This document shows, piece after piece, positions 1 through 62,844 of a DNA stretch of 64,000 nucleotides (position 1 is the stretch's first letter; every line of letters starts with the position of its first letter). The translations under genes were made by a program, and so were the position numbers. The notes beneath the pieces were generated by a model. The model was not told the DNA's origin and made no database searches. It saw only the letters and a program-made list of their open reading frames with translations. Origin of the DNA: Macrostomum lignano (lineage: Eukaryota); assembly GCA_002269645.1 (NCBI GenBank), contig NIVC01003517.1, positions 1-64,000 on the forward strand, in the 5' to 3' direction.

Positions 1-2057
1 TACAGTACACGCTATATTAATTTCAAGGAAATAAAAAAACACGTTGTTTGTCTGCTTGGTATTTTTATCACAATTCAGCTGAATTTGGACATTATTAGGC
101 AGCACAAAACTACATCACAATAGAGTGACAAGAACGACCCACACAAACTGAAAGTCGACTTAATTATACTTTCTGACACACCTACTGACCAAAAATGATG
201 TCCATAACATACTTCTGAAGAGTCAGGATCAACATTTGAATGTCGGCTTCCAAAATATTTTCCACTAATCACGAGTTTAGCGTCCTGGTATACTGCTAGT
301 GGTCCTTGTGCCTGCAGCGTCTACAGCTGCACTACCTGTACCGGAGTACGACTGAGATGCTTTGGCTGGTCAGATGGAACTTCCAATGAGCACAATGACC
401 TGGTGCGCCGGATGACCTGGTGATAGCCTCCAAAGTTAATGGCAGTAAACAAAACTGCAAATATTCGAAGTTTTGAATTTTAAAACTTAAAAATAATTCA
501 ATGAGCTATGAGTTATGAGCACTGATTTTTTGAACTGGTAGATTCTAAAAAAATTACAAGGCTGAAGATATGAGCCATTGATTAACTGCTCATATCTTTA
601 GCATTATAGAGTTCCAGAGAGACTGCAACTTCGTCCCGTATAGTTTCTCGCAGATTTCAACTTGACAGAGGATCGGTGTGGCTTGTTCGTACCCAATGTC
701 GATGGTGTTAAACACGACTGAGTCCACAATGCCCAACGCTCTTCGGACAACGCCTCTGGCATCCAGGTGCAAGTCTACGAGCTGAACCACAATACGAAGT
801 ATCCTCATGAAAAATCTGGTTGCCTTCTTTAGTTGGTTTTATCGATTCCTCGCCTTCTGTCTGCGCTCTCTTTTCGAAGACAAAAAGCTTGCCAGAAAGT
901 GTTGAGGAATTTTTAGATGGGGAAAGATGTTTTTTGCTAATTTTTCATGCAGGTTGTAGTTTCGGATCAAACAAATTTTGATACCACTCAAGAAAAAACT
1001 TCATACCACAGTCTTGCCCTATTAGCGCCTGCGGCCCCCAGTCTGTCCAGGAGGACCCGTCGATACGTGGACTGCATCCGGAGCGACGCTCAGGACACCA
1101 ACACTCACTGACACCGTCAGTGGGACAGCCGGACTTTGTTCGCTCGTTGGCGCTTCGGTGTGCCATCTGACGCCCCCTCCACTGATTTACTCGTACTGGG
1201 CGGACTGCGTAGTTTTGCTGTTGTGGCCGAAAGCACAATTACGTCAACGAACTAGCTGGGTACAGTTAAGCAAAGTGCAGCAACACTTGAACAAAAAAGA
1301 AGAATGAAACAACACCAACAGGCACTCATACGTCGCTCAAATTCGAGCTAACGCAAAGTCTTAGCAAACGAATAAGAACTCATTTCTACCTCTGCAAAGT
1401 GCCCCCTCAGTCTATCCCAGCGCGGCATTGTGTAGGAGAGACTGATTAAGTTTGCCAGATTTTTATCTCGTAGCAAAAACAGAAAAAATAACAAGAAATA
1501 ACAGAACCGTACGGTCATACGTACGCGCACTTTTCCCTACCCCTTGGACTCGCATGCTTAGCTATTTTATTTTTTTAGATTATTTTACAGCTTCATTTCT
1601 TAACAGGATCGCCCCTATCTACACAATAGTGCTGAGACGGCGTTTAAGCAAAATTACACTGCAGCAAAATGAGTCGGAGGGGTGCCAGAAAAAAAATTGG
1701 TTAAGATTTTGTTAAGATCATGCAGAGAATCAGACACTCAACGTCAGTTCTTTCATAGAAGTACTCCGTCTCTACCCTTCTGTCTCTATCTAGTCTAGCT
1801 AAGTGTGTATACCTTTGATTCACTGGTACTCAACGTGAAGTAGCCAATAGTATGCCTGCACAGAAATAAATGGGGTGATATATCTTTGTCTTGTCAGGTA
1901 AGAACATACTTGTAGGTTCTTAGTTTAGCTACTAGTTTAAACTAATATGTATCTATTCGATGTAAAATATCACTAAAGCGATTGGAATGAGTCTGGAATA
2001 CAACTTACCCAATGAAGTAAGTACGCTTATAATGAGAAATGTCTAAAATGTTTAATT

Positions 2058-2812
2058 TTGCTTACTATCTTCCATCCATTTAACAAAACATCTGTTGACG
2101 TTTCCACCCTCAAAAAGGGCCCAAACGTCGATCCCGACTCCACTGCCGATACCCTGTGCAGACTTGCTCAAAAAGGTGATCACACGCAACTTTTGCGTCG
2201 GATTACTTTCGACAACTGCGGAGCACAGAGACTGAGCGATGGCCTGACACCTCTGATTTGCGCTGCAAATGCGACCAGAAGGCCAACTGAAAGCCACAGC
2301 ATCTGCGCCGAGCTTATCTTGCAGAAAGCGGAAAATCCAGAAGCCAGAAATAATCTGGCCAATGCGAGGGACCTCTCGGGCCAGTCCTGTCTACACCACG
2401 CTGCAGCGTCAGACAATGTGCAAGTTCTGGAGGCGGCACTGCGAGCAGGGGCGCAAGTGAATGCACTGGACAAGTCTGGCCACTCTGCTCTCTACATGGC
2501 CGTCCAGCGAGTAAACAGAAACGCTGCAAACCTGCTGCTAAAAGCGGGCGCTGATCAAAGCCACGGCGGCGGAGAAGGTCAGAGTCCCGCGGAGCTGCTG
2601 GCCAATCAGGAAGCGGAAGTTCAGAAACTGCGAGAAGCCTTCAAAGGTCCCGAGAGCATTCACAAATTCTTCAATCGAGAAGAAAGGAGTGCAGAGCTAT
2701 TGATCCCGTTACTGCAGTCAGTGATGGAGCGTCAGTCAACTGACGTATCATCGGAGCGTCTACTGAAACTTGTAGTAGACAAGATCAACGAGACAAAGTA
2801 CATCCTTAAACG
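2058..2812 (+). CDS. Ankyrin-repeat exon (module 1)
   Basis: Motifs GLTPLICAA, GQSCLHHAA...ALRAGAQVNALDKSGHSALYMAV...LLLKAGAD; donor CG/GTAATT after 2812. Confidence 0.9.
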
Positions 2813-5800
2813 GTAATTAATTGCTTAGGTAATACTCGTATCTTTCTTAATTGATTAAAAGCCTGGCGTCTCAGAGAGATAGTAGCATACGCTCGTATAA
2901 ATGGATTACTCTATCCGACCTTTCCGTGTTTTAGGCTGGAGAGTAGGTTTCAGGGACTTGCATGGTGGACTGCGAGAGCCGGATAGCCAGAGATCACTGG
3001 CCCAGATCGATGAGGGAAAGGCTCTATAGGCTGCTAAGATGCTGCCAAGATGCATTTGCTGATCTTCGGGCCGCTGTAGGGGACTAAATGGAGGCTGCCA
3101 CTCACGGAAAATCACGGGGCGTCATTTTCCTCTCTATCGAGGCAGGGAGCCCCGCCCTGATGATTGGGAGTGCTGAGCTGGCTGGAGAGTTGCCTATAGC
3201 CGAAGATGGGACTCTGCTTGAACGTTCATCGGGAGTCTGACACTCCAAATAGAGGACTTTTCAGCAGGGGATACTTTGTGACTGTTTCTGACAAAAATTC
3301 CAGTAAAATACATGTACCAGTCTGCTAAAATACTACTTCGTAAGAGTAGCGTGAGGATGTGTGAACTCTATATGGCTCCAGTTGCTCAGTGTGAGAAGAG
3401 TCCTACATCAGGGGATTGCGATACTTTTAGCTAACAGATCTACATGTATATTTGCTACTATAGAGTACTCTCAGGCGCCTTTTCAAGCCTACCCCAACCT
3501 CCTCATGCCTCACTGCACTAGGGAGAGGCTTATCAATTAAGTCATTCTCTGAATTGAGGGAATTCAAATGAAGGATTTAACAATTCAGGCAAAAAAGCGG
3601 AATGCAAAAGATTTCGTGCTAATAAAGTGGGTGTTAGAAAATCAAGAAATAGAAGGAGTCCGAGCAAGGGTGATCACGCAGATAGGGTGTGATTATAACA
3701 GTTTTTTATTCCTGCTATCTGCTCACAAGCCAGAAATAATTTTATAACACACCGGCCTCTAAGGGCCCAAATATGAGTGTGATGTATGAGTCTCCGAATC
3801 TCTGTGCCGCAAAATTACTCAAGGCAAGCAATCTGGTTTAGTTGGCAAAATGAAGAGCTATGCATAGGTTGAGCGGGCCAGGGTTATCACTCGAGCAGCT
3901 TTCTCTGTCCCGTTGTTAGGCAATCATATCACCCCCCCCGAAGCATTGCTGCGAGTCTACTGTGTCACGCGTTCGCAGGCTGCTGACTTGGCTTTCGAAC
4001 CTCAGCTTTGTTATCTGTCCTTTAGTATAGCGCTGATCTGGCTGGATAGCATCGGTCGAGGCGAGAGGAGGCCGTTGTTTTTTCGCTTCGATGTAAGCAC
4101 AATTCCAGTGCTTACAGTAATAACCTACCATCAGGCTCCTGCGTGTGCAGTTGAGTGAAAGATAGAATTTGGGAAACCACTTACGTGAATGAGAACTAAC
4201 AGTAGTCACAAGAGAGAATGGAAATTGGCAGGGAAAAGGGCGAGCAATTGGGAGATGGGTGAGCAGTTAGGGGTGCGCGGGGGAAAAGAGTGAGCATTTT
4301 TATGGGTAGAAATGGTAGGAATAATAAGAGAGAGAAAAGGGTGAGAGAAGTAATTAATATGAGTGAGAAGGGACCGCATTGTGCAATTTTTATGTGGAGA
4401 AAGGAAAAGGGGAAAGCGTTTAGAATGCGGGGAAAAACAAAGGAACTAAGAGGTAGTTAAATTAAGACAGAGGCGCGAGACTACACGGACAGCCGCAGGT
4501 ACAGTCACGGAGTGATGGCGAGTGCTATGGCGGAAGACAGCGGCGAGGTGGGGAGTTGAGCCCAACCCGAACGCGAAACCCCCCGTCACCGAAACCCAGA
4601 CCGTGGTTATAACAATATCATTCATAGATCGAATAGAAACTACTGAGAGAGGGCGAGCACCTCTCAGTCTCGGTGAGCCCATGCCCCAGTCACCGGTGCT
4701 GGTGGCAGACTGGCGATGGTCTTGTATGTACATGTGCAAGCCAGAAATTAACTTCGAAATATGAAAATTCCAAAATAGAATAATGCCATTTCCGACAGTC
4801 ACAAATATCCCCAGTTTTTCCATATTGGTCATCCTACTCGTATTGCATCTGAAATTTTACAGGTGGCTTCCGAATCCGATTACGGCCGATTTCAAAGAGG
4901 TTTCGAAGAGGAGGCGAAAAAGCTTCGCAAGTGGAAATTACTGCAATATGTACACAACTGAAATGGAGCCACCAGGTTTGCCAGTTGTTGTCCGAGTTCT
5001 CAAGAACGTCAAGAACACGGAGATATTTAAGCAGGAAAAGCGCGGCTTGGAGGCGCTGAAGAAGACAAAACATCGCAACATCGTCCAGTTTCTGTCGGCC
5101 AATGTCAGCGAGAGAGAATTCGAAATCTTTCTCGAGAAGATTGAAGGAAAAACAATGAAGCAACACCTTGAAGTCAGTGGACCTCTCCCAGAGTCAACGA
5201 TACGTCGTTACTTCCGTCAGGTAAAAAACAGCTTTACTGTTGAATTCCGCCTGTACAGCAATTCGACGTCGCTGGCAAAAAAGAAAATAGGTACTTCTAC
5301 ATTACAGCGAAGTTTGGTCGACGCATAACGTCGTAACCTGTCACCGTAATGTGCTCATAAAATGACCCATTTTGCCAGCAACGTCCATCGACGCCAAGTA
5401 CTCCTAGGTCGGCGGACGTCGGAATGTTGCGCAGGCCATACTAAAAGAATCTCATTTACGCACACTTTCTGTTTCTCCTCCTCTTTAGATAGCCAGCGCT
5501 CTCTGCTACCTGCACAACCACCCGTTTGGACCAATCATACATAAAGACATTCGATGTGAAAACTTTATGCTAACTTACGGCGGATTCGTGAAGCTGATTG
5601 ACTTTGGATTTGCTCTGTTAAGTGGAAGTATGTGGCCCGAGGAACCACTGTCTGGGGACCCTGGTCACATGGCACCAGAGCTTTCTGGCAACCGGACCTA
5701 CACACCATCGTCAGACATTTGGGCAACTGGCTGTGTGCTCTACGACATGTCAATGGGCACAGATCCGTCCGTGAAATCAGCACCTGATGACGCCGATCTT

Positions 5801-8800
5801 GATGCTATTCAACTTAATCTTCGCTCTTTTCGTTTTCTTCGCAAGCTGCCAGTGCCACAAATTCAACCAGCCGAAAAATTTTCCCAAGAGCTGCTTAATC
5901 TGCACCAACAGTGCATGGAGACTGAACCGGCTAGAAGGATCAATGCTATCGGAATTTTACTGCACCCATTCTTGACAAATGTGGATAGCCAGTAAGTTTC
6001 TCGGTACCCTGAGCAAACTAATTCGTGTATTTTTTCATGAATTAATCGTGAATGCATAAATATTTAGCAGAAATATGATTAACACTATACCAATTTTAGT
6101 TGCTTTTATTCAGGTTTGACAAAACAAAGCTACGTGTAAATAGTACATTGTTGCTACAATTGTCAACGTTTTCTGTAATTTTTTCATGATTGCATACAGT
6201 AGAGAACAAACAAATGACTTTTATCGGTCAATGACCATCTCGCCCAAAGTACGGTAAAAAACTAGATGGTTTGTTCTGCTGGTGTAGAGCCACCTTTGAA
6301 ATAATCTAAGTTTAGCTCCCATAAGAAAAATGTACATCGTGCAGTTATGAAATTTTACAATAATGCACCTTCACGGGATCTGGAACTGCAGATGTTAAAA
6401 GCCTACATTTGCGTACTCTGTACATGCAATGATTGTAATGACAGTTTAGGAAATGAGATTAAACGGAAATAAAAGAGAAAAAAGCAGAAGGAATCTGTAG
6501 GCATTTATATCCACATTCTGCTCGAAATTTGTTGTCTACCAGAAATACGATCGACCTCTCGGATCCGTCCTGTCTCCACCACGCTGCAGCGTCAGACAAT
6601 GTGCAAGTTCTGGAGGCGGCACTGCGAGCAGGGGCGCAAGTGAATGCACTGGACAGGTCAGGCCACACTGCTCTCTACATGGCCGTTCAGCGAGGAAACA
6701 GAAACGCTGCAAACCTGCTGCTAAAAGCGGGTGCCGATCAAAGCCTAAATCAGCGATTTTTTGGCAGAGAAGGTCCGAGTCCCGCGGAGCTGCTGGCCAA
6801 TCAGGAAGCGGAAGTTCAAAAGCTGCGAGGAGCTTTCAAAGGTCCCGAGAGCATTCATGAATTCGTCAATCGAGAAGAAAGGCGTGCAGGACTATTGACT
6901 CCGTTGCTGCAGTCAGTGGCGGAGCGTCAGTCAACTGACGTATCATCGGAGCGTCTACTGGAACTGGTAGAGGACAAGGTCGATGAAGTTAAATTACTAT
7001 TTGAAAGGTAAAATTGTTTCATTTTTGCAAAATTTACTACAAACGTGTTATTTTAAGTTATTAAGTCGGAAAAAGAAACATTGAAACTTATTTATTTTGA
7101 GGTAGAGGGTCACATAAACACCCTAACAAATTCTTTTAGGTGGCTTCCAAATCCGATTACGACCAGTTTCGAAGAGGTTTCGAAGACAAAACGAAAAAGC
7201 TTAGCAAAAGGAAATTTCTGCGATTTTTACGAAACTGAAACGAAGCCACCAAATTTGCCCATTGTCGTCCGCGTTCTCAGAGACTTCAACAACAAAAGAA
7301 TATTCGAGCTAGAAAAACGCGGCTTGGAGGCGCTGAAGAAGACAAAACATGTTAACATCATTCAGCTTCTGAAGGTCCACGACAGTAGGAACGAAATTGA
7401 AATGTTTCTCGAGAAGATCGAAGGGCAGACATTGCAGCAACGCCTCGAGAAAACTGGACCATTTTCGGAGATAAATATCCGAAGATATTTTCGCCAGGTA
7501 CGAGACAATCAAAATGTATAGTCGGATATACGAATATTAGGGTACACTACTAGTAGTAGGATAGCAGATTAGGCAGCTGGGCCTGTCATACATGTATCGA
7601 CTTGCGGGACTCTGGAGCATCGCTGATTATAGTAAGAGGTATTATAATATGCTACGCTCTACGATTTAGCAAATCGTCTGATCCGCGTTCAAGGCTGTTA
7701 CACGCTTACATGGAACAAAATACGAGTACTTCAACTTTCATGTTCAAAGTATAAAAATTATTGGAAACAAAATCATAACGGCTAAGAAATAACTCTTGAT
7801 TTAAGTTGAAGGATTAAGTTTTGATTTAAATTACAGAAGCCCTAAACCGTTACGAAAAGGCCATTTTTTGCTGACAATGTTTCAGCGAGACGGGACGTTT
7901 TAGTTGTTTAGCACTCAATTCCCAGCAATTCAATTCACCTTCTGGAATTCCGAATTGTAAATGAGTAAGTGTGTGTTTTGTCCGAGGTTTCACGCACAAG
8001 TTTATTGTATCATGACCTTTTTGCCCGGTCATTGTTTAATTAAATGCTACCGGAGATCGGCGAGCAAGCAAACTTCAGACAGATTTTCTTGCGCTAAATT
8101 TCATGTAGGAATTTTCTTTCATTTCTTTCGTCCATGCTAAATTTCGTCTATGGCCTAAACCAATTTGGCGCTAAAAGAAGCAAATTTTGGCAAAATTTGT
8201 TTGGGGAAACCCAGCAGTGTATTTTGAGCAGCTCTCCAACAATACAGGTACCTATGAATGCACCTCGGAAGAAACATACACTTGCTCCATTTGAGATTCG
8301 GAAGTCCAGAAAGTACAAAAGTGCAAGTATTCCCGTCCTTCTCTTTTGGTGGTTGTCAATGCTTTCAGGTTCTTATTAAGATCAACTTTTTTTATTATCG
8401 GGCGTTCCTTTTAGAATAATAAATTTAATAACTTTCGTACCATGGGTTATCTAAACCTATCCAGATTCTTCATGTTGACTTCAAGAGTCCAAATGAGAAT
8501 TTTGTACACCGTAAAATTTTGGAGTTCGAGAAATGTGAAATAAAATTGACTTTTTCACCCATATTGTAGATAGCCAGCGCTCTCTGCTACCTACACAACC
8601 ATCCGCATGGACCAATCATGCATAGGGATATTCGCTGCGAAAACATTATAATTATTCACAATGGTTTTGTGAAGCTGATCAACTTCGGATTTGCAATGCC
8701 AAGCGGAAGTATTTCCATGTCGAACGATGAACTGGCTGAGTTCTTAGGCTACATGGCGCCAGAGGTGATTTTAGAGGATAAAAAGTACGGTCGATCGTCC

Positions 8801-10840
8801 GACGTTTGGGCCGCCGGCTGTGTGCTCTACGCCATGTCAATGGGCAGAAGTCCGTACTCGTACTCAGAACCTGATGGTGCCGGCTCTAATACTTCTCAAG
8901 AAAGACTTGCCAACCTAATCGACAGGCTGTATGGGCCAGTGGCGGAAATTCAACCAGCCGAAAATTTTTCACCTGAGCTTCTTGACTTATGCCGACAGTG
9001 CATGGAGAAAAACACGGCTAGACGGATAAACGCTACTGGAATGTTGCTGCACCCATTCTTGAGCAATGGGGAGAGCCAGTAAGTGCTTTTGTAGCCAAGT
9101 GGCAGGTAATATATATATAAATACACGTTTTTGATAACTGAACTATAAAGAATCGAGATCATTGACCCTGACACAGAAACAATGCACGAACCTTATCATT
9201 GTCAACCTAGTCTTGATAAAAAACTTAGGGGTAGCAAAACTCGATTCATAGTCTGAATCCTCAATTTTTATGTTTGAATTCGACAGATAACACATAGCTT
9301 ACTGTACTTTAGTGTGACTTTATTGAAGTCTGCTAGAATTATTAGTAAATTATTGCTTTGCATGTTTAGAATTCAGTTCCAATTGTGAATCACAACTTTT
9401 GAAAGCTTTATGGTGCCATAAAGCTTAATTCACAGCTTGGGGGTTGTAGCCGAATGGTTAGAGTGTCGGACTCACGATTGAAAAGTCGGGGGTTCGATTC
9501 TCGACCCAATTGGGACAATTTGTGTCCTTGAGCAAGACACTTAAGTCTACATTGCTTCAGTTCACCTGCAGCTGTAAAATGGGTGCCAGCATTAGCTGGG
9601 GTGATTGAGGGTGTGTGTAGCGACCCCCCAGTCCTTGGACTGAACAGTCGTACGCAATAACTTCGGCTGAGCTGTCGGTTGCACATCTGCTGTACGTCTC
9701 ATCTCAATTTCAGTTGTTTTAAATATGATTTCATCAATTTATTTCAGAATTTTGCTTCGGACAGAAATTCACTCGTGGATTGAAGATGTGCCATCGGTGA
9801 TCGAGGCCCTATCCGTGTTGGTAAATTCCATAAACAAGAGTGACAAAGATAAGAAGACTGCAAAGGTATCTGGCACATCCGTGGCCGTCGGCGGTGGAGT
9901 CGTGGCGATCGTTGGATTTGCACTGCTAATCCCAAGCCTTGGAGCGGCGCTTCCAGTGGCACTCGCTGGAACTGGAGCGGCCATTGCTGGGAGCACCACC
10001 GCTGCCGGAGCTGAAATCATTGGTGGCGCTGTTCAGACTAATGGGGTTTGCAAGGCGCAGTCTCTCATTGTCGAGTTTAGAAATACAACGGAGCGACTGC
10101 TAAGAGATCAGCTTGAGTCGATCTGCTCCAGCGTGCAGATCCAGCTGATGAACCGTCAGTCCGTGATTGACCTCGAACGAGCAAGGATCAAAATCTTGCA
10201 GCTGAAAGCAGACGTCGATGAAATGATTTACCAGCTTCAAAGCTTAGGCATTTTAGAAGCTTTGGAAGCTGAAACGAAAGAAACCAGTAGTTTTGAAAAG
10301 TTTATATCAAAGATCCGTGAATTGACGAAAGCTAAGAAGACAAGGAATCCGGTAGTTGAGCTATTGGCGAAAATCATTGAACCCATCAATGTTCTGCTTG
10401 CGAACCTTGACGATGATCTGGGTGCAATGCAGAGAGGAAGATCTGTTAATGAAGAATCGTCAACAAGATTCAATCAAGAGCTCCAGAAATCGATCGGGTT
10501 TTTCTCCTCAATGCTTCGTATCCTTTTATTCGGCTCTTCTAAAGATGAATTTCACATGTACGTAGATGAAATCAAGTTTGGTCTGAGAGCAGCTACCGGA
10601 GGTGCGCAGATAAGTCTTGAGGCGACTGGCATTGCCGCAAGCTTAGCTGGAAGAATACTGGGAGTTGTGGGCTCGGCAGTCTTCACTGCTGTTGACATTG
10701 GATTCCTGGTGAAGTACTCAGCGGATCTGCACCGAGCTAGACAGGGTGAGGCCGCTGAAAAGGCCCAGCCAATTATCTGCTATAAGGAAATCTACGAGAA
10801 GCTGAGGGAAGAGGCTATGACTCAACTGGCTGAAAACTAA
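2058..10840 (+). CDS. Multi-exon ankyrin-pseudokinase-ankyrin-pseudokinase-apolipoprotein L-like protein, about 1340 aa; start codon or first exon unresolved
   Basis: Exons 2058(approx)-2812, 4863-5220, 5489-5991, 6543-7007, 7140-7497, 8570-9078, 9748-10840. All six introns are GT-AG with matching phases (2,0,2,2,0,2). Summed length 4041 nt is a multiple of 3. No in-frame ATG near 2058, so an upstream exon is likely. Confidence 0.7.
4863..5991 (+). CDS. Protein kinase-fold domain 1 (exons 4863-5220 and 5489-5991), probable pseudokinase
   Basis: KHRNIVQF, IFLEKIEG, YLH, HKDIRCEN, VKLIDFG, HMAPE, SDIWATGC, ARRINAIGILLHPF. Beta3 reads VVVR where VAVK is expected. Confidence 0.9.
6543..7007 (+). 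CDS. Ankyrin-repeat exon (module 2, N-terminally shortened copy of module 1)
   Basis: Near-identical to 2370-2812 (SCLHHAAASDNVQVLEAALRAGAQVNALD); phase-2 acceptor CTACCAG at 6542, donor after 7007. Confidence 0.85.
7140..9078 (+). CDS. Protein kinase-fold domain 2 (exons 7140-7497 and 8570-9078), probable pseudokinase
   Basis: KHVNIIQL, HRDIRCEN, VKLINFG (DFG to NFG), YMAPE, SDVWAAGC; same intron position as domain 1. Confidence 0.9.
9439..9690 (+). mobile_element. tRNA-derived SINE with CORE-like central domain (family 1)
   Basis: A box TAGCCGAATGGTTAGAG, B box GGTTCGATTCTC, CORE-like GTGTCCTTGAGCAAGACACTTAA...CTGTAAAATGGG; second copy at 29210-29478 on the minus strand. Confidence 0.8.
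9748..10840 (+). CDS. Apolipoprotein L-like terminal exon
   Basis: Gly/Ala-rich hydrophobic hairpin AKVSGTSVAVGGGVVAIVGFALLIPSLGAALPVALAGTGAAIAGSTTAAGAEII and C-terminal AGRILGVVGSAVFTAVDIGFLVKYSADLH resemble the two conserved ApoL blocks; acceptor TTTCAG at 9747. Recognised by eye, no profile search run. Confidence 0.7.
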
Positions 10841-11580
10841 ATCCGGTAATCGAAAGCTATTCCTCTATTTTAGAGGACACTATAGTGACAATGTCGAACA
10901 AAAGTAATAACTGGGATCGTGGTCCTTGCGGTTTAGGCTACATGGTTTTTATAATTATTCTTAGTCTACTGATTTTGATTTGGTAGAGTGCTGCCACCAG
11001 GTCCCTGATCTTCTCTAATCCTAGTACTTGGTGATTAGCGACTACCTTTGTGTACTGATATGGGCATTGACTACCTGTAACAGTTTTACGTATTCCCCAA
11101 CTTTATCCCCCCAGATTACCTCTTACTTTTCTAAGTTAGAATTTAGCTTCAAGACTGAAAGTTCCTTGGAAACCAACCGACGGCCTTCAATTCTCTCTTG
11201 GAGCTTCAATTGCTCGCTAATTATAAGGAAGTCTCAAATTCACGATCTAACCCCACCATAATTTTATCCCTGGCTTAAACTACTGATAGTAGTGTAAACA
11301 CATAACTGCACTATTACAATCTTTACTTTTTTGTTAGATTTTACTGCCGATTTTTGCGCAAAAATAGAAATGCTGTAAAATCACAGCGCACCAATTGCCA
11401 ATAACCTACAAAGGATTGTAATTTTGAGGTGGGAAATCGAGACTCTACTGTAATTACAGAATTATTACAGGTGAAAGCACTCGTCTTTTTCATATATTGT
11501 AAAATGCCGAGTGTGTGTTTACCCCAAAACAGTTACCCCATGTCCATAATTATTAATTTTTGGTCTCATTGTTATCTCAA

Positions 11581-12570
11581 TGTTTACCCAAGAAACTGCT
11601 ATGTATCCGTGTTTACCTAGAAAACTGCTATGTATCCGTGTTTACCTAGAAAACTGCTATGTATCCGTGTTTACCTAAGAAACTGCTATGTATCCGTGTT
11701 TACCTAAGAAAACTGCTATGTATCCGTGTTTACCTAGAAAACTGCTATGTATCCGTGTTTACCTAGAAAACTGCTATGTATCCGTGTTTACCTAGAAAAC
11801 TGCTATGTATCCGTGTTTACCTAAGAAACTGCTATGTATCCGTGTTTACCTAAGAAAACTGCTATGTATCCATGTTTACCTAAGAAAACTGCTATGTATC
11901 CGTGTTTACCTAAGAAACTGCTATGTATCCGTGTTTACCAAAGAACTGGTATGTATATCCATGTTTACCCAAAAGACTGCTATGTATCCGTGTTTACCCA
12001 AGAAACTGTTATGCATCCGTGTTTACCCAAGAAACTGTTATGTATATCCATGTTTACCCAAAAGACTGCTATGTATCCGTGTTTACCCAAGAACTGTTAT
12101 GTATCCGTGTTTACCCAAGAACTGTTATGTATCCGTGTTTACCCAAGAAACTGTTATGCATCCGTGTTTAACCAAGAAACTGTTATGCATCCGTGTTTAA
12201 CCAAGAAACTGTTATGCATCCGTGTTTAACCAAGAAACTGTTATGCATCCGTGTTTAACCAAGAAACTGTTATGCATCCGTGTTTAACAAAGAAACTGTT
12301 ATGCATTTGTGTTTAACAAAGAAACTGTTATGCATCCGTGTTTAACCAAGAAACTGTTATGCATCCGTGTTTAACCAAGAAACTGTTATGCATCCGTGTT
12401 TAACCAAGAAACTGTTATGCATCCGTGTTTAACCAAGAAACTGTTATGCATCCGTGTTTAACCAAGAAACTGTTATGCATCCGTGTTTAACCAAGAAACT
12501 GTTATGCATCCGTGTTTAACCAAGAAACTGTTATGCATCCGTGTTTAACCAAGAAACTGTTATGTATCCG
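11581..12570. repeat. 29-30 bp minisatellite array (AAGAAACTGYTATGYATCCGTGTTTAMCC), copy 1
   Basis: Directly visible tandem units; accounts for the spurious MYPCLPKK ORFs. Confidence 0.97.
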
Positions 12571-14150
12571 TAATCAGTGTTATTATTACAAAAACTGGTA
12601 TGTATCCGTGTTTACTAAAAGACGATTTTCACTATGTCATCATGTCTCTGCGCTTAACCGAGAAACAATAAATTTTTTACTCTAGAAAAGCTAACTCTGA
12701 CACTGTTTGAGATCCCTTAATAAGCAGATAAAATCTTCACGATATGTTCAGAGCTTATTGATGCAACTATAATCGAAACAACTATTTTTAGGTGCTGGAG
12801 GATTTAACTGTTTGCGTTGTTTACTGTAGTCTATAATGAAGTCAACCAAAATGATTTAATCATGGATGCCGTATACCAGAAAAAATGGTATAAGGTTAAC
12901 GACGCTAGTAGAGACGCGTAACGGAGAAAACCTTTTTCAACCAAAGGAAAAAAAACTAAAAAACAAAACAAATGATGCATTCGATCGGTCAGAAAAAAAC
13001 GCCAGAATATTGATTAACACTAACTATATGAATGAAAATCATGGTAGGTGTCATGTACCCACATGTAAAACAGAAAAGCGCTGGAAATGTACTCAGAAGC
13101 CTAAGATGACAACAATCGAGACGTCAAAACAAAAAACAAACAACTGAAAACAGAAAACAAGCTGGGTGGATCATGAGTAGTCATTTGCGTCATAAACGAA
13201 AAAAAGTTGGCTGTTGGAGTTGCTAAAATGTCAATAAAAGTCTAGATCAAGTGGATTCAGTACTTTCTATTCGGCTAGAATTTCTTGAGTAGACACGATC
13301 AAGCAAGTCGGATAAAAACAACGATAAAATTTATTGAAGTATTTGTGCGAAAAAAGAGTTAAAGTTTGAAACTACTAGCTGCTAAATAATGAATAGTCAA
13401 AAGTAAAATCGATCTGTTAAGGCGATGAAGTTTAACAGTAAGATTTAATCGGATTGAGGTTTCAATTAAAATAGCGCAGGTATACAACCATAAAAATATG
13501 AGAAAATCAAGAGTTAATATACTAGCTTTAATTTTCTAGGAAAATAAAACAAAAAGAAGGTTCATGGAAATAAACAGACGAGCGCCACAATCCGAAATCG
13601 TTTGAATTTCGCAGAACGAAATTCTAGAAGAACGAAACAACCGGAGACCGACAAGCAGGCAAAATTCTGAGGCTATATCGATTGTTCTTTCCCGGATTTT
13701 TTGTTAGAGTTTTGTTTACGAGTATGGTAAATCCGTTCGCAATACACAACTGTGCAATGCATTTTGCGTTGGGAAAAAGCTACGAGTATTTGACAAAGAG
13801 TTCAAAGGTTCTGTCAAATTAAAGATTAAGATACTGAGAACCTCCTATCCTTCGGATGCTCTTGACTCCATTGTAATCCGCACGACTTGCGAGTGTAGCG
13901 TCCAATTCTACTTTTTCCATGGAAGGATACTAACATCAGAATCGAGCTAGATTTACTTTGTAGAGGCTTTCAAATTTTTAGGTTTAAATATTTTGACAAT
14001 AAAAACATTGCAAAAAACAGCAAAAACATACAAAGAGTATAGGAAAAATGAAAAATGAAAATGAAATATGATAAATATGAAACCAGTTTCACAAAGGATA
14101 TTGTTTAGCAGCATTAATTCAGTCCCAGTAGTCGCTAACCGTTCGAGTTT

Positions 14151-14590
14151 TCACGGCTCAACAGCATGATTGTCATATTTCAGATTTTTTCCGATCAGCA
14201 TGCCACCCCAGTACCAGTAGATATGAGATTGGTCCAGGGCTTTTAACTCCTGTGAATACTTATCCTTGATTTCTTGCAAAAATCTGCTGATTGTGGGATG
14301 ACCGGAGTGAGACGCATTCTTGAGCACGAAGAATTCCACTCCGACTGTCTGAGGCGTAGCGCACTGGAATGCGTCCAGACAGAGATGAATGCACAGAGCA
14401 TTCTCTGGCGTAGTGGGGTCAGCTTTCAAAATATCTTCAGTGAAACTTGCGCTAAATCCGTTTCTCAAAGCTTTTGAATCGACGAAGCACTGAGTGCAAA
14501 GCTTTTGCATGTGCCGCAAAATCTCAGTTGAGGTTGTCAGCCTCTTGACGCCTGAATCAACTGCAGCATAGATGCTCACGTGAGAGGCTG
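14151..14590 (-). pseudogene. Orphan 3' fragment of the endonuclease-domain gene created by the duplication
   Basis: Paralogous to 18889-19326; truncated at the duplication junction; frame still open. Confidence 0.8.
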
Positions 14591-15373
14591 CAGTCTCTCA
14601 TTGTCGAGTTTAGAAATACAACGGAGCGACTGCTAAGAGATCAGCTTGAGTCGATCTGCTCCAGCGTGCAGATCCAGCTGATGAACCGTCAGTCCGTGAT
14701 TGACCTCGAACGAGCAAGGATCAAAATCTTGCAGCTGAAAGCAGACGTCGATGAAATGATTTACCAGCTTCAAAGCTTAGGCATTTTAGAAGCTTTGGAA
14801 GCTGAAACGAAAGAAACCAGTAGTTTTGAAAAGTTTATATCAAAGATCCGTGAATTGACGAAAGCTAAGAAGACAAGGAATCCGGTAGTTGAGCTATTGG
14901 CGAAAATCATTGAACCCATCAATGTTCTGCTTGCGAACCTTGACGATGATCTGGGTGCAATGCAGAGAGGAAGATCTGTTAATGAAGAATCGTCAACAAG
15001 ATTCAATCAAGAGCTCCAGAAATCGATCGGGTTTTTCTCCTCAATGCTTCGTATCCTTTTATTCGGCTCTTCTAAAGATGAGTTTCACAAGTACGTAGAT
15101 GAAATCAAGTTTGGTCTGAGAGCTGCTGCCGGAGGTGCGCAGATAAGTCTTGAGGCGACTGGCATTGCCGCACGCTTGGCTGGAAGAATACTTGGAGTTG
15201 TGGGCTCGGCAGTCTTCACTGCTGTTGACATCGGATTCCTGGTGAAGTACTCAGCGGATCTGCACCGAGCTAGACAGGGTGAGGCCGCTGAAAAGGCCCA
15301 GCCAATTATCTGCTATAAGGAAATCTACGAGAAGCTGAGGGAAGAGGCTATGACTCAACTGGCTGAAAACTAA
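14590..15373 (+). pseudogene. Orphan 3' fragment of the ApoL-like exon created by the duplication
   Basis: Nearly identical to 10057-10840 (3 aa differences); lacks the N-terminal hydrophobic hairpin and the acceptor. Confidence 0.8.
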
Positions 15374-16108
15374 ATCCGGTAATCGAAAGCTATTCCTCTA
15401 TTTTAGAGGACACTATAGTGACAATGTCGAACAAAAGTAATAACTGGGATCGTGGTCCTTGCGGTTTAGGCTACTGGTTTTTATAATTATTCTTAGTAGT
15501 CTACTGGTTTTGATTTGGTAGAGTGCTGCCACCAGGTCCCCGATCTTCTCTAATCCTAGTACTTGGTGATTAGCGACTACCTTTGTGTACTGATATGGGC
15601 ATTGACTACCTGTAACAGTTTTACGTATTCCCCAACTTTATCCCCATCTTACCTCTTACTTTTCTAAGTTAGAATTTAGCTTCAAGACTGAAACTTCCTT
15701 GGAAACCAACCGACGGCCTTCTCTCTTGGAGCTTCAATTGCTCGCTAATTATAAGGAAGTCTCAAATTCACGATCTAACCCCACCATAATTTTATCCCTG
15801 GCTTAAACTACTGATAGTAGTGTAAACACATAACTGCACTATTACAATCTTTACTTTTTTGTTAGATTTTACTGCCGATTTTTGCGCAAAAATAGAAATG
15901 CTGTAAAATCACAGCGCACCAATTGCCAATAACCTACAAAGGATTGTAATTTTGAGGTGGGAAATCGAGACTCTACTGTAATTACAGAATTATTACAGGT
16001 GAAAGCACTCGTCTTTTTCATATATTGTAAAATGCCGAGTGTGTGTTTACCCCAAAACAGTTACCCCATGTCCACAATTATTAATTTTTGGTCTCATTGT
16101 TATCTCAA

Positions 16109-17305
16109 TGTTTACCCAAAAGACTGCTATGTATCCGTGTTTACCTAGAAAACTGCTATGTATCCGTGTTTACCTAAGAAACTGCTATGTATCCGTGTTT
16201 ACCTAAGAAAACTGCTATGTATCCATGTTTACCTAAGAAAACTGCTATGTATCCGTGTTTACCTAAGAAACTGCTATGTATCCGTGTTTACCTAAGAAAC
16301 TGCTATGTATCCGTGTTTACCAAAGAACTGGTATGTATATCCATGTTTACCCAAAAGACTGCTATGTATCCGTGTTTACCCAAGAAACTGTTATGTATAT
16401 CCATGTTTACCCAAAAGACTGCTATGTATCCGTGTTTACCCAAGAAACTTTTATGCACCCGTGTTTAACCAAGAAACTGCTATGTATCCGTGTTTACCCA
16501 AGAAACTGTTATGTATCCGTGTTTACCCAAGAACTGTTATGTATATCCATGTTTACCCAAAAGACTGCTATGTATCCGTGTTTACCAAAGAACTGGTATG
16601 TATATCCATGTTTACCCAAAAGACTGCTATGTATCCGTGTTTACCCAAGAAACTGTTATGTATATCCATGTTTACCCAAAAGACTGCTATGTATCCGTGT
16701 TTACCAAAGAACTGTTATGTATATCCATGTTTACCCAAAAAACTGCTATGTATCCGTGTTTACCAAAGAACTGGTATGTATATCCATGTTTACCCAAAAG
16801 ACTGCTATGTATCCGTGTTTACCCAAGAAACTGTTATGCATCCGTGTTTACCCAAGAAACTGTTATGTATCCGTGTTTACCCAAGAAACTGTTATGTATC
16901 CGTGTTTACCCAAGAACTGTTATGTATCCGTGTTTACCCAAGAACTGTTATGTATCCGTGTTTACCCAAGAACTGTTATGTATCCGTGTTTACCCAAGAA
17001 ACTGTTATGTATCCGTGTTTACCCAAGAAACTGTTATGCATCCGTGTTTAACCAAGAAACTGTTATGCATCCGTGTTTAACCAAGAAACTGTTATGCATC
17101 CGTGTTTAACAAAGAAACTGTTATGCATCCGTGTTTAACCAAGAAACTGTTATGCATCCGTGTTTAACCAAGAAACTGTTATGCATCCGTGTTTAACCAA
17201 GAAACTGTTATGCATCCGTGTTTACTCAAGAAACTGTTATGCATCCGTGTTTAACCAAGAAACTGTTATGCATCCGTGTTTAACCAAGAAACTGTTATGT
17301 ATCCG
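16109..17305. repeat. 29-30 bp minisatellite array, copy 2
   Basis: Same unit as 11581-12570, longer, with an expanded middle block of variant units. Confidence 0.97.
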
Positions 17306-18888
17306 TAATCAGTGTTATTATTACAAAAACTGGTATGCATACGTGTTTACTAAAAGACGATTTTCACTATGTCATCATGTCTCTGCGCTTAACCGAGAAA
17401 CAATAATTTTTTTACTCTAGAAAAGCTAAACTCTGACACTGTTTGAGATCCCTTAATAAGCAGATAAAATCTTCACGATATGTTCAGAGCTTATTGATGC
17501 AACTATAATCGAAACAACTATTTTTAGGTGCTGGAGGATTTAACTGTTTGCGTTGTTTACTGTAGTCTATAATGAAGTCAACCAAAATGATTTAATCATG
17601 GATGCCGCATACCAGAAAAAATGGTATAAGGTTAACGACGCTAGTAGAGACGCGTAACGGAGAAAACCTTTTTCAACCAAAGGAAAAAAAACTAAAAAAC
17701 AAAACAAATGATGCATTCGATCGGTCAGAAAAAAACGCCAGAATATTGATTAACACTAACTATATGAATGAAAATCATGGTAGGTGTCATGTACCCACAT
17801 GTAAAACAGAAAAGCGCTGGAAATGTACTCAGAAGCCTAAGATGACAACAATCGAGACGTCAAAACAAAAAACAAACAACTGAAAACAGAAAACAAGCTG
17901 GGTGGATCATGAGTAGTCATTTGCGTCATAAACGAAAAAAAGTTGGCTGTTGGAGTTGCTAAAATGTCAATAAAAGTCTAGATCAAGTGGATTCAGTACT
18001 TTCTATTCGGCTAGAATTTCTTGAGTAGACACGATCAAGCAAGTCGGATAAAAACAACGATAAAATTTATTGAAGTATTTGTGCGAAATAAGAGTTAAAG
18101 TTTGAAACTATACTAGCTGCTAAATAATGAATAGTCAAAAGTAAAATCGATCTGTTAAGGCGATGAAGTTTAACAGTAAGATTTAATCGGATTGGGGTTT
18201 CAATTAAAATAGCGCAGGTATACAACCAAAAAATATGTGAAAATCAAGAGTTAATATACTAGCTTTAATTTTCTAGGAAAATAAAACAAAAAGAAGGTTC
18301 ATGGAAATAAACAGACGAGCGCTACAATCCGAAATCGTTTGAATTTCGCAGAACGAAATTCTGGAAGAACGAAACAACCGGAGACCGACAAGCAGGCAAA
18401 ATTCTGAGGCTATATCGATTGTTCTTTCCCGGATTTTTTGTTAGAGTTTTGTTTACGAGTATGGTAAATCCGTTCGCAATACACAACTGTGCAATGCATT
18501 TTGCGTTGGGAAAAAGCTACGAGTATTTGACAAAGAGTTCAAAGGTTCTGTCAAATTAAAGATTAAGATACTGAGAACCTCCTATCCTTCGGATGCTCTT
18601 GACTCCATTGTAATCCGCACGACTTGCGAGTGTAGCGTCCAATTCTACTTTTTCCATAGAAGGATACTAACATCAGAATCGAGCTAGATTTACTTTGTAG
18701 AGGCTTTCAAATTTTTAGGTTTAAATATTTTGACAATAAAAAACATTGCTACACCAAAGCAAAAACAATATACAGTACAGAAAAAATGAAAAATTAAAAT
18801 GAAATATGATAAATATGAAACCAGTTTCACTAAGGATATTGTTTAGCAGCATTAATTCAGTCCCAGTAGTCGCTAACCGTTCGAGTTT

Positions 18889-20658
18889 TCACGGCTCAAC
18901 AGCATGATTGTCATATTTCAGATTTTTTCCGATCAGCATGCCACCCCAGTACCAGTAGATATGAGATTGGTCCAGGGCTCTTAACGCCTGTAAAAACTTA
19001 TCCTTGATTTCTTGCAAAAATCTGCTGATTGTGAGATGACCGGTGTAATGAGCATTCTTGAGCACGAAGAACTCCACTCCGACTGTCTGAGGCGTAGCGC
19101 ACTGGAATGCGTCCAGGCAGAGATGAATGCACAGAGCATTCTCTGGCGTAGTGGGGTCAGCTTTCAAAATATCTTCAGTGAAACTTGCGCTAAATCCGTT
19201 CGTCAAAGCTTTTGGATCGAAGCACTGAGTGCAAAGCTTTTGCATGTGCCGCAAAATCTCAGTTGAGGCTGTTAGCCTCTTGACGCCTGAATCAACTGCA
19301 GCATAGATGCTCACGTGAGAGGCTGCTGGCTGATTGTTGTAGCTAGCTGCAAACGGCCATTCTATTTTTGGGTCGGAAAAAAGTTCATACTCAAACTTTG
19401 TCGCTACAGCGGGGTCATCCTCATTTTTACATGTACAGTTCAGCTCTAACGACGCTTGAACAGAGCGGTCATATAAATATTTACCGGTATTTTTTGAATT
19501 CGGGATTCTCGTATCTGTCGTAGTTTGAGATAACAACAGTATGAAATTCTTCTCTCCTTTTTCGAATTTATTTATCCTGACGTCTGGTGCAGATAATTTG
19601 CTTTGAGGGAAACCAATATCATTAACATCAAAGTCTCCCATGACGATAATCCATTGGCTTCCTGCGTTGAATTTGCTTGTCAGAAAACTTTTGAGCTGCT
19701 TCCAAAAAGTGTCGTGCTCTAGTTTAACATTTTTCTGTCTTGGCGCGAACACTTGCACTACGGTGCCGAAACCTTCCGTGCAGTTCAAATCCACACCAAT
19801 GATTCTGCTCGATACGAAATCGAAATTAAGGACGGACTTCTGAAGCTCATCGCCTCTAACGACAATTGCCACTCCTCGGTAGGCCGTGTCGCTATTACCA
19901 CAATGAGCGACTAAGTAGTCGCTAGAGTTTTGCTGTTCGGTAGTAGTTCCTTGATCCCTTGATTCATTGATTCGAAACATTCCTTCTCCCATCCAATGTG
20001 TCTGTCCGATGCCTAGGAGGTTCACTTTGTTATCTTCACTTTGCATCGCTTTCAAAAGTGCCGCAAAATTATGTTGGTTTTGGTTTTCTTTCTTATTGAT
20101 TTCTGGCAAAATATTGCATCCATGTATTCCTCTATTGACTGTTGCAACTTGTACTTGGCCTGAAATTAGATACAATTGATTTTGATTGAAATTCGATCCA
20201 GCGCACAAAATACGTTTATAATTAAGGGATTGACTTTTAACCCACTCTGAAGTGTCTTACTCTGAAAGAACATATCTAACCTAAATAAAGAATTAAAAAA
20301 AATTCTGTTCTGCTTCTATTCACAAAAGTAGTTTATATCTTGGTCTTTTGCATACGAAAAGGGGGTTTTCATGCATCCCCCATCATCAAAATATATATTC
20401 AAAATATCTTATTTCTATAGAATTTCTATAGCAGTTTGCAACTGCAACTGCAATCGAGCTACAATTCATTTTAGTGCATGTTAACTATGGTAGGCCAGGC
20501 TCTATCCAGTCTGATTTTCTAAGATCTGAGTGTCAGAACCTGCGAGCATATTTTGGGAACATTCACCACTGAACCAAATGCATTTCTGATGTACAACGTA
20601 CGAGCCAATTTGCAGGTATTAACCAGTACTTACCTTTAACGGTTGAGGACGAGGCCAT
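18889..20658 (-). CDS. Two-exon gene (431 aa): RTE-type exonuclease/endonuclease/phosphatase-fold domain with degenerate active site plus unknown C-terminal domain
   Basis: Exon 20658-20634 (MASSSTVK, donor AAG/GTAAGT) joins exon 20159-18889 in phase 1. Motifs VATVNRG, LLGIGQTHW, RGVAIVV, SSRIIGV, VQVFAP, IIVMGDFD match the RTE endonuclease pattern. No reverse transcriptase follows. Confidence 0.75.
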
Positions 20659-29000: not shown

Positions 29001-30683
29001 CTCCTCGCTTAGCAACCAGAGAAAGGCGCTCTCCTGACCCTCTGGCAGACGTGTCTCGTTGGCAGCCGCGCAGTGAACGGCGGTGCGACCTTCGGCATCG
29101 CGCCAAGTGAAGCACTCGTCGCCAAGACGGTTTCGGATGGACCGAAGGCAATCCGCACCCTGTTATTCATAATGATAATAATAACTGATTGCATCTGCCT
29201 CAATTGAGCCGGATGTGCAACCGACAGCTCAGCCGCAGCTATTGCGCGACGCATTTGAAGGCTGCGTACGGCTGTTCAGTCCAAGGACTGGGGGGTCGCC
29301 ACACACACCCTCAATTGCCCCAGCTAATGCTGGCACCCATTTTACAGCTGGGTGAACTGAAGCAATGCAGAGTTATGTGTCTTGCTCAAGAACACAAATT
29401 GTTTCGAGTGCGATTGGGAATCGAACCCCCGACCTTTCAGTTGTTAGTCCGATGCTCTAACCACTAGGCGGATACCTCCTCAGTTGTTCAACAAGTTCGC
29501 AGCAAAGATTCATTTGAATAAAACTGTATCAGGAATGCTTTTGCCTGCCTGTCGCCATCAGTCAGCCTGCCGCCTTATACTACAAAAAAGGTGCTTCTAA
29601 GGTGACCTGTTGAATACGTAGATATAGAAAGAGTTCTACGATTGATAAAGTTTAATTTATTGTATATTTGACTCCGCATCACTGATTGCTCATAGAAAAG
29701 CGGTTTTTTGGCAATAAAGCAATAAAATACTGCTATCGAGTAAGTAACACCTGTTATGAAATAAAGCGGAAATTCACCTGAAACCAAGCCGCCAGATGAA
29801 TTGGGGAATTTTTCTTCTCGTCCCTCTCTTTGAGACAGTCAGGAGTCAGCTGCTTGACGAACCAGTCCAGCGCGTCAGGAGAGTTTCGATTTTTGGCCGC
29901 GTACATCACGGCAGTCCGGCCGAGGAAGCCCTTTCGCAGGAAGCCGTCCAGTTTGCCCAGTTGCTTCTTCGCCATCTCCAGTAGCTGCACGCTTCGCTTC
30001 TCGGCGCACGCGTGCAAAGCGTTCGTGTTGCTGATGTTGCCCAAGATGAAGATCTCCTTTGGCAGGTTGTTCAGCATCCATTTGAATGTCGTCTCGTTTG
30101 GATTGTGCGCTGCGTAATACGCCACGGATCGTTTCGAGTCGTCTAGAGCTTTGAAGCAGTCTTCTCCACAGAGTCTCTTCATCAACTGCATCGCGCTGCT
30201 GTCCAGCTTCCAGGCGGCGAGATGAACCGGTGTAGCACCCGATCGAGTCCTGCTAGTCATGTACTCAACTCCGAATGAATCCGCCAGTATTTCGAATGTC
30301 TTGCACACAACAGCTGGGTCCTTTGTGCTATCGACTGCCGCCATGTGAGCAAGATTCCAGCCCTGCTCAGGGTCAGTCTCATCAGCTAAAGTGCGTTCTC
30401 CTTGTCCTTTTCCTTTTCGTACTTTGCTGTGATTCTTTACTGAAACGCCTGTTCTGGGCGGCAGCAGGCGTTCCAGTGCGATGTTGTCCCCATCGGCAAT
30501 GCATTGAACTGCCCGATTGAAAAGTTCTTTCAGATCTGCGTCTTCTGGCTTTGGCGAAATCTGAACTGACGCCGAACCGCTCGCGCCTCGACGCAGTGAT
30601 TCCGAGTCCACGAGGGTGCCCCCGTAAGGATTCGTGGCAACAAATGACGCCGTGGTTTCTGCTTTAATTGTGGTTCCGGTCAT
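23012..30683 (-). CDS. Ankyrin-repeat TRP channel with TRPM-type S1-S6/TRP module, about 1416 aa
   Basis: Exons 30683-29778, 29159-28833, 28220-27615, 26885-25186, 24998-24680, 23404-23012; phases 0,0,0,2,0 match. About 14 ankyrin-like motifs; IGPKVSML, FLLILAVMIFSFGVFFLVLLYP, NIVMWNLLIALFS, IWRKTSYD...VLPLPLSLL; C-terminal coiled coil. Confidence 0.8.
23520..23800. repeat. 21 bp minisatellite (CACTCACCAACAGACAGTGG-type) in the last TRP intron
   Basis: Visible tandem units; related array at 24383-24505. Confidence 0.9.
24383..24505. repeat. 22 bp minisatellite (CAGACAGTGGCACTCTCACTTT) related to 23520-23800
   Basis: Visible tandem units. Confidence 0.88.
27135..27360 (+). mobile_element. 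Diverged SINE-like repeat (family 2)
   Basis: B-box-like TTCGATTCC followed by blocks (GCACGAAAATTGGCC, ATGAGGGGCCAATCCCCAAAGCACAG, TCAGGGCCACTGTACACCCTGT) shared with 40240-40445. Confidence 0.55.
29210..29478 (-). mobile_element. tRNA-derived CORE-like SINE (family 1), second copy
   Basis: Reverse-complement homologue of 9439-9690, inside TRP intron 1. Confidence 0.8.
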
Positions 30684-54639: not shown

Positions 54640-54744
54640 TCTGGAGGCCTGTGCGTAAAATTTTTGGAGGGGGTTGAACTGGGATTGAAATACATGAAAA
54701 TGCATGAGTTGCATGGACGCTTTTGAACCCCATGAACCACAAAA

Positions 54745-62835: not shown

Positions 62836-62844
62836 GGGCATCTT

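Follow-up and report, generated by a model that had tools for sequence, protein, structure and literature searches.

A Macrostomum lignano gene with two ankyrin-pseudokinase modules and a C-terminal apolipoprotein L-like domain

The first 64,000 nucleotides of contig NIVC01003517.1 of the flatworm Macrostomum lignano (assembly GCA_002269645.1, Mlig_3_7), referred to here as the window, carry a gene of eight exons (4011 nucleotides, 1336 amino acids) in which ankyrin repeats, a helical linker and a kinase-like domain occur in this order twice and are followed by an apolipoprotein L (ApoL)-like domain. This gene structure and the assignment of the domains can be regarded as secure. Taken as a whole, the data are best explained by a cytosolic ankyrin-pseudokinase-ApoL protein that may act as a regulated membrane effector, an explanation to which we give an even chance of being correct. 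Positions 1-16840 of the window were found to be identical to the first 16,840 bases of the contig (locus L002). GenBank holds one gene there, BOX15_Mlig020186g1 (1987..10840), and the top protein matches to the gene are M. lignano proteins with 98% identity.

A first-pass annotation, made from the DNA sequence alone, had joined seven exons into one frame with a coding start at position 2058. The seven exons do share a frame, giving 4041 nucleotides without an internal stop when joined, but a first exon of 30 nucleotides had been missed and the start was misplaced. The ATG actually lies at 1987. Exon 1 (1987..2016; this and all following exons are on the plus strand) contains the start codon and 10 codons (MSLEYNLPNE), ends in the donor GAA/GTAAGT at 2017 and is spliced to the acceptor at 2117; the N-terminus of the public models P0001, P0003 and P0122 maps to it. 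Exon 2 (2118..2812) encodes about four ankyrin repeats (Pfam Ank, Ank_2 and Ank_4) and a helical linker of about 80 amino acids, which together open unit 1. It ends in the donor CG/GTAATT with the frame open into exon 3. The N-lobe of pseudokinase 1, with the glycine loop ASGNYC, the beta3 motif VVVR and the alphaC motif KRGLE, is encoded by exon 3 (4863..5220), and its C-lobe, with HKDIRCEN, DFG and APE, by exon 4 (5489..5991), which ends in CA/GTAAGT and would read through into CAG TAA. Unit 2 repeats this arrangement. Following an acceptor (...tctaccag) that ends at 6542, exon 5 (6543..7007) encodes two ankyrin repeats and, as in unit 1, a helical linker of about 80 residues, exon 6 (7140..7497) the N-lobe of pseudokinase 2 (LAKGNFC, IVVR, KRGLE) and exon 7 (8570..9078) the C-lobe (HRDIRCEN, NFG replacing DFG, and APE), again ending in CA/GTAAGT. 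Exon 8 (9748..10840) follows an acceptor (tatttcag) ending at 9747 and encodes the ApoL-like domain of 363 amino acids, with the stop codon TAA at 10838-10840.

The first reading had placed the apparent stops after both kinase domains inside splice donors, and this holds. CAG TAA is found at 5990-5995 and 9077-9082, and in each case the final G of CAG opens the donor GTAAGT (5992-5997 and 9079-9084). The phase of the acceptors at 6542 and 9747 matches, as had also been proposed, with one exon base completing the split codon CA/A for Gln at both junctions. All internal exon junctions are phase-compatible. In exon 5 no in-frame Met occurs before residue 46, and in exon 8 none before residue 134, which lies past the hydrophobic hairpin described below; an in-frame stop sits just 5′ of the exon-5 acceptor. 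A usable start codon ahead of the conserved core is missing from both unit 2 and the ApoL exon. A 35-nucleotide spliced leader ending in ATG is trans-spliced onto many M. lignano genes (PMC8629364). Joined at 6542 or 9747, this leader would create a TGA in the protein frame, which speaks against separate cistrons beginning at these acceptors. The claim of one spliced gene thus stands on an open frame, phase-compatible internal junctions, the lack of independent starts and transcript-derived models at three loci. The exon-2 acceptor (2117/2118), for its part, was observed to be in phase 0 and in frame with the leader ATG, so that a trans-spliced mRNA could begin with MGPNVDPD... and skip exon 1.

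The M. lignano annotation was assembled with StringTie and TACO from RNA-seq data together with a de novo transcriptome, processed by TBONE and cut wherever spliced-leader or poly(A) sites had been mapped by experiment (PMC5730564). In this annotation a single gene is retained at all three loci of the family, namely the window locus, locus L001 (contig NIVC01001174.1, 99.3% identical to the window locus over 11 kb) and locus L003 (contig NIVC01001981.1). The full two-unit architecture is present in PAA71307.1 (1321 amino acids), the model on L001. The junction peptides TNVDSQ/NTIDLS and SNGESQ/ILLRTE occur in PAA71307.1, in the L003 model PAA62016.1 and in three UniRef models, and the kinase-ApoL junction is also present in PAA51015.1 (P0003). 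The last of these is the product annotated on NIVC01003517.1 itself and has 894 amino acids with one unit only (ankyrin, pseudokinase 2, ApoL). PAA71307.1 lacks 6 and 9 residues that its own genomic DNA encodes, which shows that transcripts were mapped across paralogues. In the GenBank and UniProt entries (PAA51015.1, PAA71307.1 and A0A1I8GKE7) the proteins are labelled as hypothetical, uncharacterised or protein kinase domain-containing. At L003, the paralogue of exon 3 (7700-8076, unit-1 kinase N-lobe) shows a 1-bp gap relative to the window, so that the model PAA62016.1 begins inside kinase 1; this gap may be genuine, and shift the frame, or may stem from an error in the long-read assembly.

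A Pfam hidden Markov model search on the spliced protein, of the kind proposed with the first-pass annotation, returned ankyrin repeats, two Pkinase domains and ApoL (PF05461), all above threshold. Pkinase was matched with 141.6 bits by unit 1 (exons 3-4) and 157.6 bits by unit 2 (exons 6-7), and ankyrin matches were obtained in both units. We compared the catalytic columns of both units with those of 23 reference kinases. The first glycine of the glycine loop, present in 23/23 references, is Ala in both units and the third (21/23) is Cys. Likewise, both units carry Arg in place of the beta3 Lys (23/23), Gly in place of the alphaC Glu (21/23) and Arg in place of the catalytic-loop Lys (21/23). 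The DFG Asp (23/23) is Asp in unit 1 and Asn in unit 2, and the HRD Asp, the catalytic Asn and APE, all conserved in the references, are kept in both. With the beta3 Lys, the alphaC Glu and two loop glycines missing from both units, and the DFG Asp missing from unit 2 as well, the initial call of two pseudokinases is well supported by the residues present. The nearest kinases are of the NEK, MAP3K (ASK1, plant ANP/NPK1), PLK4 and CDKL types at about 25-32% identity, and the best solved-structure matches are Nek7, ASK1, PLK4 and CDKL3. In the AlphaFold model of unit 1, the predicted local distance difference test score (pLDDT) is about 90 over most of the kinase domain and 40-60 in the ankyrin repeats and linker, so that no domain arrangement can be read from it.

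For ApoL (PF05461) the last exon reaches 39.1 bits, above the cut-off of 25.9 (E 7.7e-10), in two stretches, the better of which aligns amino acids 16-132 of exon 8 with profile positions 66-182 of 298. A phmmer search of 1.84 billion representatives with the ApoL domain gave 164 matches at E<=1e-3, mostly stand-alone proteins of 250-400 amino acids. When the query domain and 55 of these hits were scanned, 52 of the 56 sequences matched Pfam ApoL; SseC (translocon) was also matched by 8 of the 56. Named relatives include hagfish and lamprey proteins called "apolipoprotein L3/L4-like" and one mammalian ApoL (P0208), and the C-terminal region of exon 8 matches such relatives, P0208 among them. 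The most conserved part of the family is a Gly/Ala-rich hydrophobic helix-loop-helix with near-invariant Gly and Thr columns, which in the window lies at 9857..9994 (plus strand, amino acids 1010-1055, Kyte-Doolittle maximum 2.27). A second hydrophobic helix at 10625..10720 (plus strand, amino acids 1266-1297) bears the conserved Asp of a VDIGFLV motif. In an alignment of 45 ApoL-family sequences (A2), this hairpin, the second hydrophobic helix with its nearly invariant Asp (Asp316) and the terminal helix are conserved. A helical insertion of about 100 residues in the middle of the domain is common only to Macrostomum-type relatives, including a stand-alone M. lignano ApoL-like protein (P0127, 29%) and a Logan transcript fragment (P0126, 35%). 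The N-terminus of the 1336-amino-acid protein is hydrophilic and no signal peptide is present.

The only solved ApoL chain in the sequence search was the N-terminal domain of APOL2 (7lf8, 128 residues), to which the family profile A2 matched weakly (E 0.21). The same profile weakly matched the hairpin region of Hbl-L1 (7nmq, E 9e-4), a component of an alpha-pore-forming toxin, and matched the fusion peptide and heptad repeat A of the paramyxovirus F protein (E 2.5e-5). The Hbl-L1 and fusion-peptide matches fit a membrane-inserting segment, but are not evidence of homology. Like the SseC matches, they probably reflect a composition common to membrane-inserting segments, although a distant relationship is conceivable. 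ClyA, AhlB and SmhB were considered as structural relatives and set aside, the Foldseek hits being weak and not evidence. When the ApoL domain was used by itself in a word-indexed homologue search, no matches came back, probably because such a search reports hits of similar length only and is swamped by Gly/Ala words.

The second ankyrin-pseudokinase module, judged by its similarity to the first, is an old internal tandem duplication. At the DNA level the two units resemble each other in the exons only, with 87% similarity between 2361-2826 and 6544-7019, 78% between 4852-5171 and 7128-7448 and 71% between 5486-5997 and 8567-9084. The similarity begins one base inside exon 5 (6544 corresponding to 2361), which places the upstream breakpoint within an ankyrin exon that now bears a phase-matched acceptor. 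The units share 67% protein identity with a ratio of non-synonymous to synonymous substitution rates (dN/dS) of 0.37-0.51, obtained at dS values of 0.2-0.65. Their dS is 0.6 in the kinase exons versus 0.13-0.31 in the ankyrin exon, the lower values suggesting gene conversion there. The kinase substitutions common to both units predate the duplication. Between the paralogous loci, pN/pS is 0.27-0.34, the ApoL exon included; this exon differs between the window and L003 by 17 synonymous and 16 non-synonymous changes. By these ratios, all parts of the gene are under purifying selection.

Comparison with described systems places the protein in the ApoL family while its resemblance to other effectors is one of analogy only. 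With human APOL1-6 (PF05461) it has in common the Gly/Ala-rich hairpin, the second hydrophobic helix bearing the conserved Asp and the terminal helix, and, like APOL2-6, it has no signal peptide. Most retrieved homologues are stand-alone proteins of about 250-400 amino acids, whereas here the domain makes up the C-terminal third of 1336 residues, behind two ankyrin-pseudokinase modules. The order of ankyrin repeats, kinase-like domain and C-terminal effector, as well as the cytosolic location, recalls RNase L. However, RNase L has nine ankyrin repeats, while two to four are found per unit here, and Pfam detects no KEN/RNase domain. Membership of the RNase L/IRE1 family was rejected because this domain is absent and neither protein is among the 60 best solved-structure kinase matches listed. 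MLKL is alike in concept, a pseudokinase being coupled to a helical membrane-disrupting domain, but its domain order is reversed and the helical part is a 4HB/HeLo-like bundle instead of ApoL. Membership of the MLKL family was likewise rejected, since Pfam shows solely ankyrin, kinase and ApoL domains and no MLKL chain occurs among the same 60 matches. The best-scoring kinase-containing match outside the gene's own family is the M. lignano protein BOX15_Mlig034440g1 (P0005, 30% identity). It also has ankyrin repeats followed by tandem kinase domains, but keeps the canonical glycine loop, Lys, HRD and DFG and has no ApoL domain.

No orthologue outside M. lignano was found in the protein homologue searches or in the phmmer search of 1.84 billion representatives with the ApoL domain. 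A query of kinase 2 plus ApoL found just generic MAP3K- and STE-type kinases outside M. lignano, at about 31% identity. Predicted kinase-ApoL fusions do exist in cypriniform fish. XP_051981610.1 from Xyrauchen texanus (annotated as 'nek2') has Pkinase at 18-265 and ApoL at 325-535, and the Danionella model TRY83128.1 has two kinase-ApoL pairs; both are gene predictions only. As in M. lignano, the kinase lies N-terminal to ApoL in one polypeptide, and the sequences align collinearly through the kinase C-lobe into the beginning of ApoL. In contrast, the fish proteins have canonical motifs (GxGxxG, K, HRDLKPQN, DFG) and no ankyrin repeats, and XP_051981610.1 contains a single unit. The fish and M. 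lignano fusions are just 24% identical and are therefore probably independent, so that the pairing of a kinase fold with ApoL appears to have arisen at least twice. Other fusion partners of ApoL are RING fingers, in a lamprey protein named 'apolipoprotein L3-like', and an IRG-type GTPase combined with RING; P0229, P0139, P0181 and P0218 represent these fusions together with the cypriniform kinase fusions. The ApoL domain thus behaves as an effector module joined to varied regulatory or immune-type modules.

We propose that the ApoL domain is the working end of the protein. It would form a soluble helical bundle that hides the Gly/Ala-rich hydrophobic hairpin and could insert it into a membrane. 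The pseudokinase domains and ankyrin repeats might serve as binding and regulatory modules that keep the ApoL domain switched off; its release or oligomerisation would then be triggered by a ligand, by a binding partner or by phosphorylation. Such a protein would parallel MLKL in function and RNase L in architecture. Where a cytosolic protein carries ApoL C-terminal to modules for binding and regulation, membrane permeabilisation under gated control is, we infer, plausible and the most economical reading, and the fusions of ApoL to fish kinases, RING fingers and an IRG GTPase count as effector-module context in its favour. Permeabilisation, gating by the N-terminal part and a role in immunity or cell death are all inferred in this mechanism, which we advance tentatively and rate somewhat below an even chance. 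A bolder version would have flatworms independently evolving an MLKL-like executioner for necrosis or antimicrobial defence, with the tandem ankyrin-pseudokinase modules acting as a hard-wired pseudo-dimer that restrains an ApoL pore until a pathogen or stress signal releases it. This version seems unlikely; if true, the independent fish fusions would suggest that control of ApoL effectors by kinase-fold domains is general.

Several points weigh against a two-unit, regulated membrane effector. The Pfam ApoL match is partial, with profile positions 1-65 unmatched. The AlphaFold model of the ApoL domain is all-helical, but with a pLDDT of 62.8, and Foldseek found no PDB neighbour of this model at E<=0.001 (best E 0.2). 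Since human ApoLs act in non-lytic roles as well, insertion into a membrane would not by itself imply killing. Residual nucleotide binding or activity is possible, given that both units keep the HRD Asp and the catalytic Asn and that unit 1 keeps the DFG Asp. The contig's own annotation is the 894-residue, one-unit isoform and not the two-unit protein, and the transcript models derive from short reads and de novo contigs across near-identical paralogues, a support that is good but not final. Functional, expression or localisation data on the gene were not found in the literature and its supplements, and genes of this family are absent from the supplements of an M. lignano expression paper of 2026.

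The chief rival, a less probable one, is a membrane-anchored scaffold without lytic function, in which ApoL would mainly anchor the protein at, or direct it to, an organelle membrane while the ankyrin-pseudokinase modules assemble a signalling or trafficking complex. Precedents for this rival are ILK, an ankyrin-pseudokinase protein that works as a scaffold, and the intracellular human ApoLs, for which links to membrane dynamics have been described. Also in its favour are the missing signal peptide, the two strongly hydrophobic segments, which would suit stable membrane association, and the purifying selection on both tandem modules. Against it, conservation extends over the entire ApoL core, with the long helices that connect the hydrophobic segments, and is not confined to an anchor, and ApoL domains recur in fusions to immune-type modules (IRG GTPase, RING, kinases). 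A membrane-bound active kinase in place of a pseudokinase switch is more doubtful still. The retained HRD/HKD Asp, catalytic Asn, APE and unit-1 DFG Asp would permit it, and the kinase of the fish fusion is fully canonical. It is at odds with the replacement, in both units, of the 23/23 beta3 Lys by Arg, of the 21/23 alphaC Glu by Gly and of two loop glycines, and with the NFG of unit 2.

The locus might also make other products than the two-unit protein. PAA51015.1 passes directly from the ankyrin exon of unit 1 to that of unit 2, joining the units within a 20-nucleotide stretch (2643..2662, plus strand) that is identical to 6838-6857. This join may reflect a real isoform, a transcript made from a collapsed copy, or an artefact of template switching between the repeats. 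That the 894-residue single-unit protein is the main product, the two-unit form being minor or made solely from paralogous copies, is suggested by its annotation on this very contig and by a GT..AG join (AAAG/GTCCCG) that can be drawn in the identical stretch. We consider this improbable. The implied donor GTCCCG is poor and the acceptor has no pyrimidine tract, and a join within a repeat would be the classic signature of template switching, or could reflect the transcript of another copy mapped here. Moreover, the unit-1 kinase exons are intact and under purifying selection, which argues against a product with a single unit only, and the canonical two-unit splice is carried by the 99.3%-identical locus and by older models. 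Least probable of all is that the locus yields several products, a short ankyrin-pseudokinase protein and perhaps a stand-alone ApoL protein, with the fusion arising by read-through of neighbouring units. An unspliced transcript would meet an immediate stop at either kinase exon, and an AATAAA in intron 4 (6468..6473, plus strand) is a possible poly(A) signal for a putative short isoform with the ankyrin-pseudokinase part only. An ATG at 9725 in intron 7, in frame with the ApoL exon, could serve as a start from a putative internal promoter, and multi-gene precursors make up about 7% of assembled M. lignano transcripts (PMC5730564). Yet a stop after the donor CA/GTAAGT is automatic for an intron of this phase, unit 2 lacks a start codon, a leader joined at 6542 or 9747 runs into the in-frame TGA, and the TBONE-processed annotation shows a single gene at each of the three loci.

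The encoded protein belongs to the ApoL family and has a regulatory architecture not previously described. We searched the literature on ApoL with kinases, pseudokinases, Macrostomum and invertebrates, as well as the gene identifiers, and found no paper on this protein or on any ApoL-pseudokinase fusion. The earlier suggestion of a new architecture is to this extent upheld, but the sequences were already in GenBank and UniProt, and the cypriniform predictions qualify the novelty of a kinase-ApoL fusion as such. Human ApoLs matter for the killing of trypanosomes and of intracellular bacteria and for APOL1 kidney disease; to our knowledge, the regulation of their membrane insertion is still poorly understood. 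A natural ApoL domain covalently tied to its candidate regulators would offer a simple comparison of the domain alone with the full-length protein, and transgenesis has been demonstrated in M. lignano (PMC5730564). If the effector proposal is correct, the theme of a pseudokinase plus a membrane executioner, as in MLKL, would be carried to another effector fold and another phylum. If the ApoL domain is merely an anchor, the gene would represent an ordinary lineage-specific domain shuffle.

Further features were observed around the gene. A tandem segmental duplication of about 4.5 kb spans 10053-19100 of the window, 10053 to about 14584 being repeated at 14585 to about 19100 with 98.6% identity; L001 holds one copy only of this segment. 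As a result of the duplication, a second, truncated ApoL exon lies at 14585-15373 (open reading frame 14666-15373) and is without the hairpin, and a truncated copy (14151-14579, minus strand) of a 439-amino-acid open reading frame located at 18889-20208 is also present. Each copy of the segment also carries, 3′ of the gene, a 29-bp satellite array (11581-12571 with 34 and 16109-17306 with 41 repeat copies). About 1.1 kb upstream of the gene, an ApoL-like C-terminal fragment (638-871, minus strand) shows 29-36% identity and a ...FNTIDIGY... motif. It is kept at the same place in all three loci (L001 8655-8885, L003 3486-3716) and may represent either a relic or the final exon of a divergent gene of ApoL-like type. 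A dispersed repeat occurs in intron 7 (9449-9687) and at 29212-29469 (minus strand), the copies being 81.5% identical. By eye its 5′ part is tRNA-like, resembling a short interspersed element, and ARAGORN called no tRNA in the intron-7 copy. Farther along the window lie an ankyrin-repeat gene with a transmembrane-rich open reading frame (25182-30683, minus strand), a giant sacsin-like gene with a C-terminal HEPN domain (45760-54750, minus strand) and integrase and RNase H fragments of a long terminal repeat retrotransposon (58648-63633).

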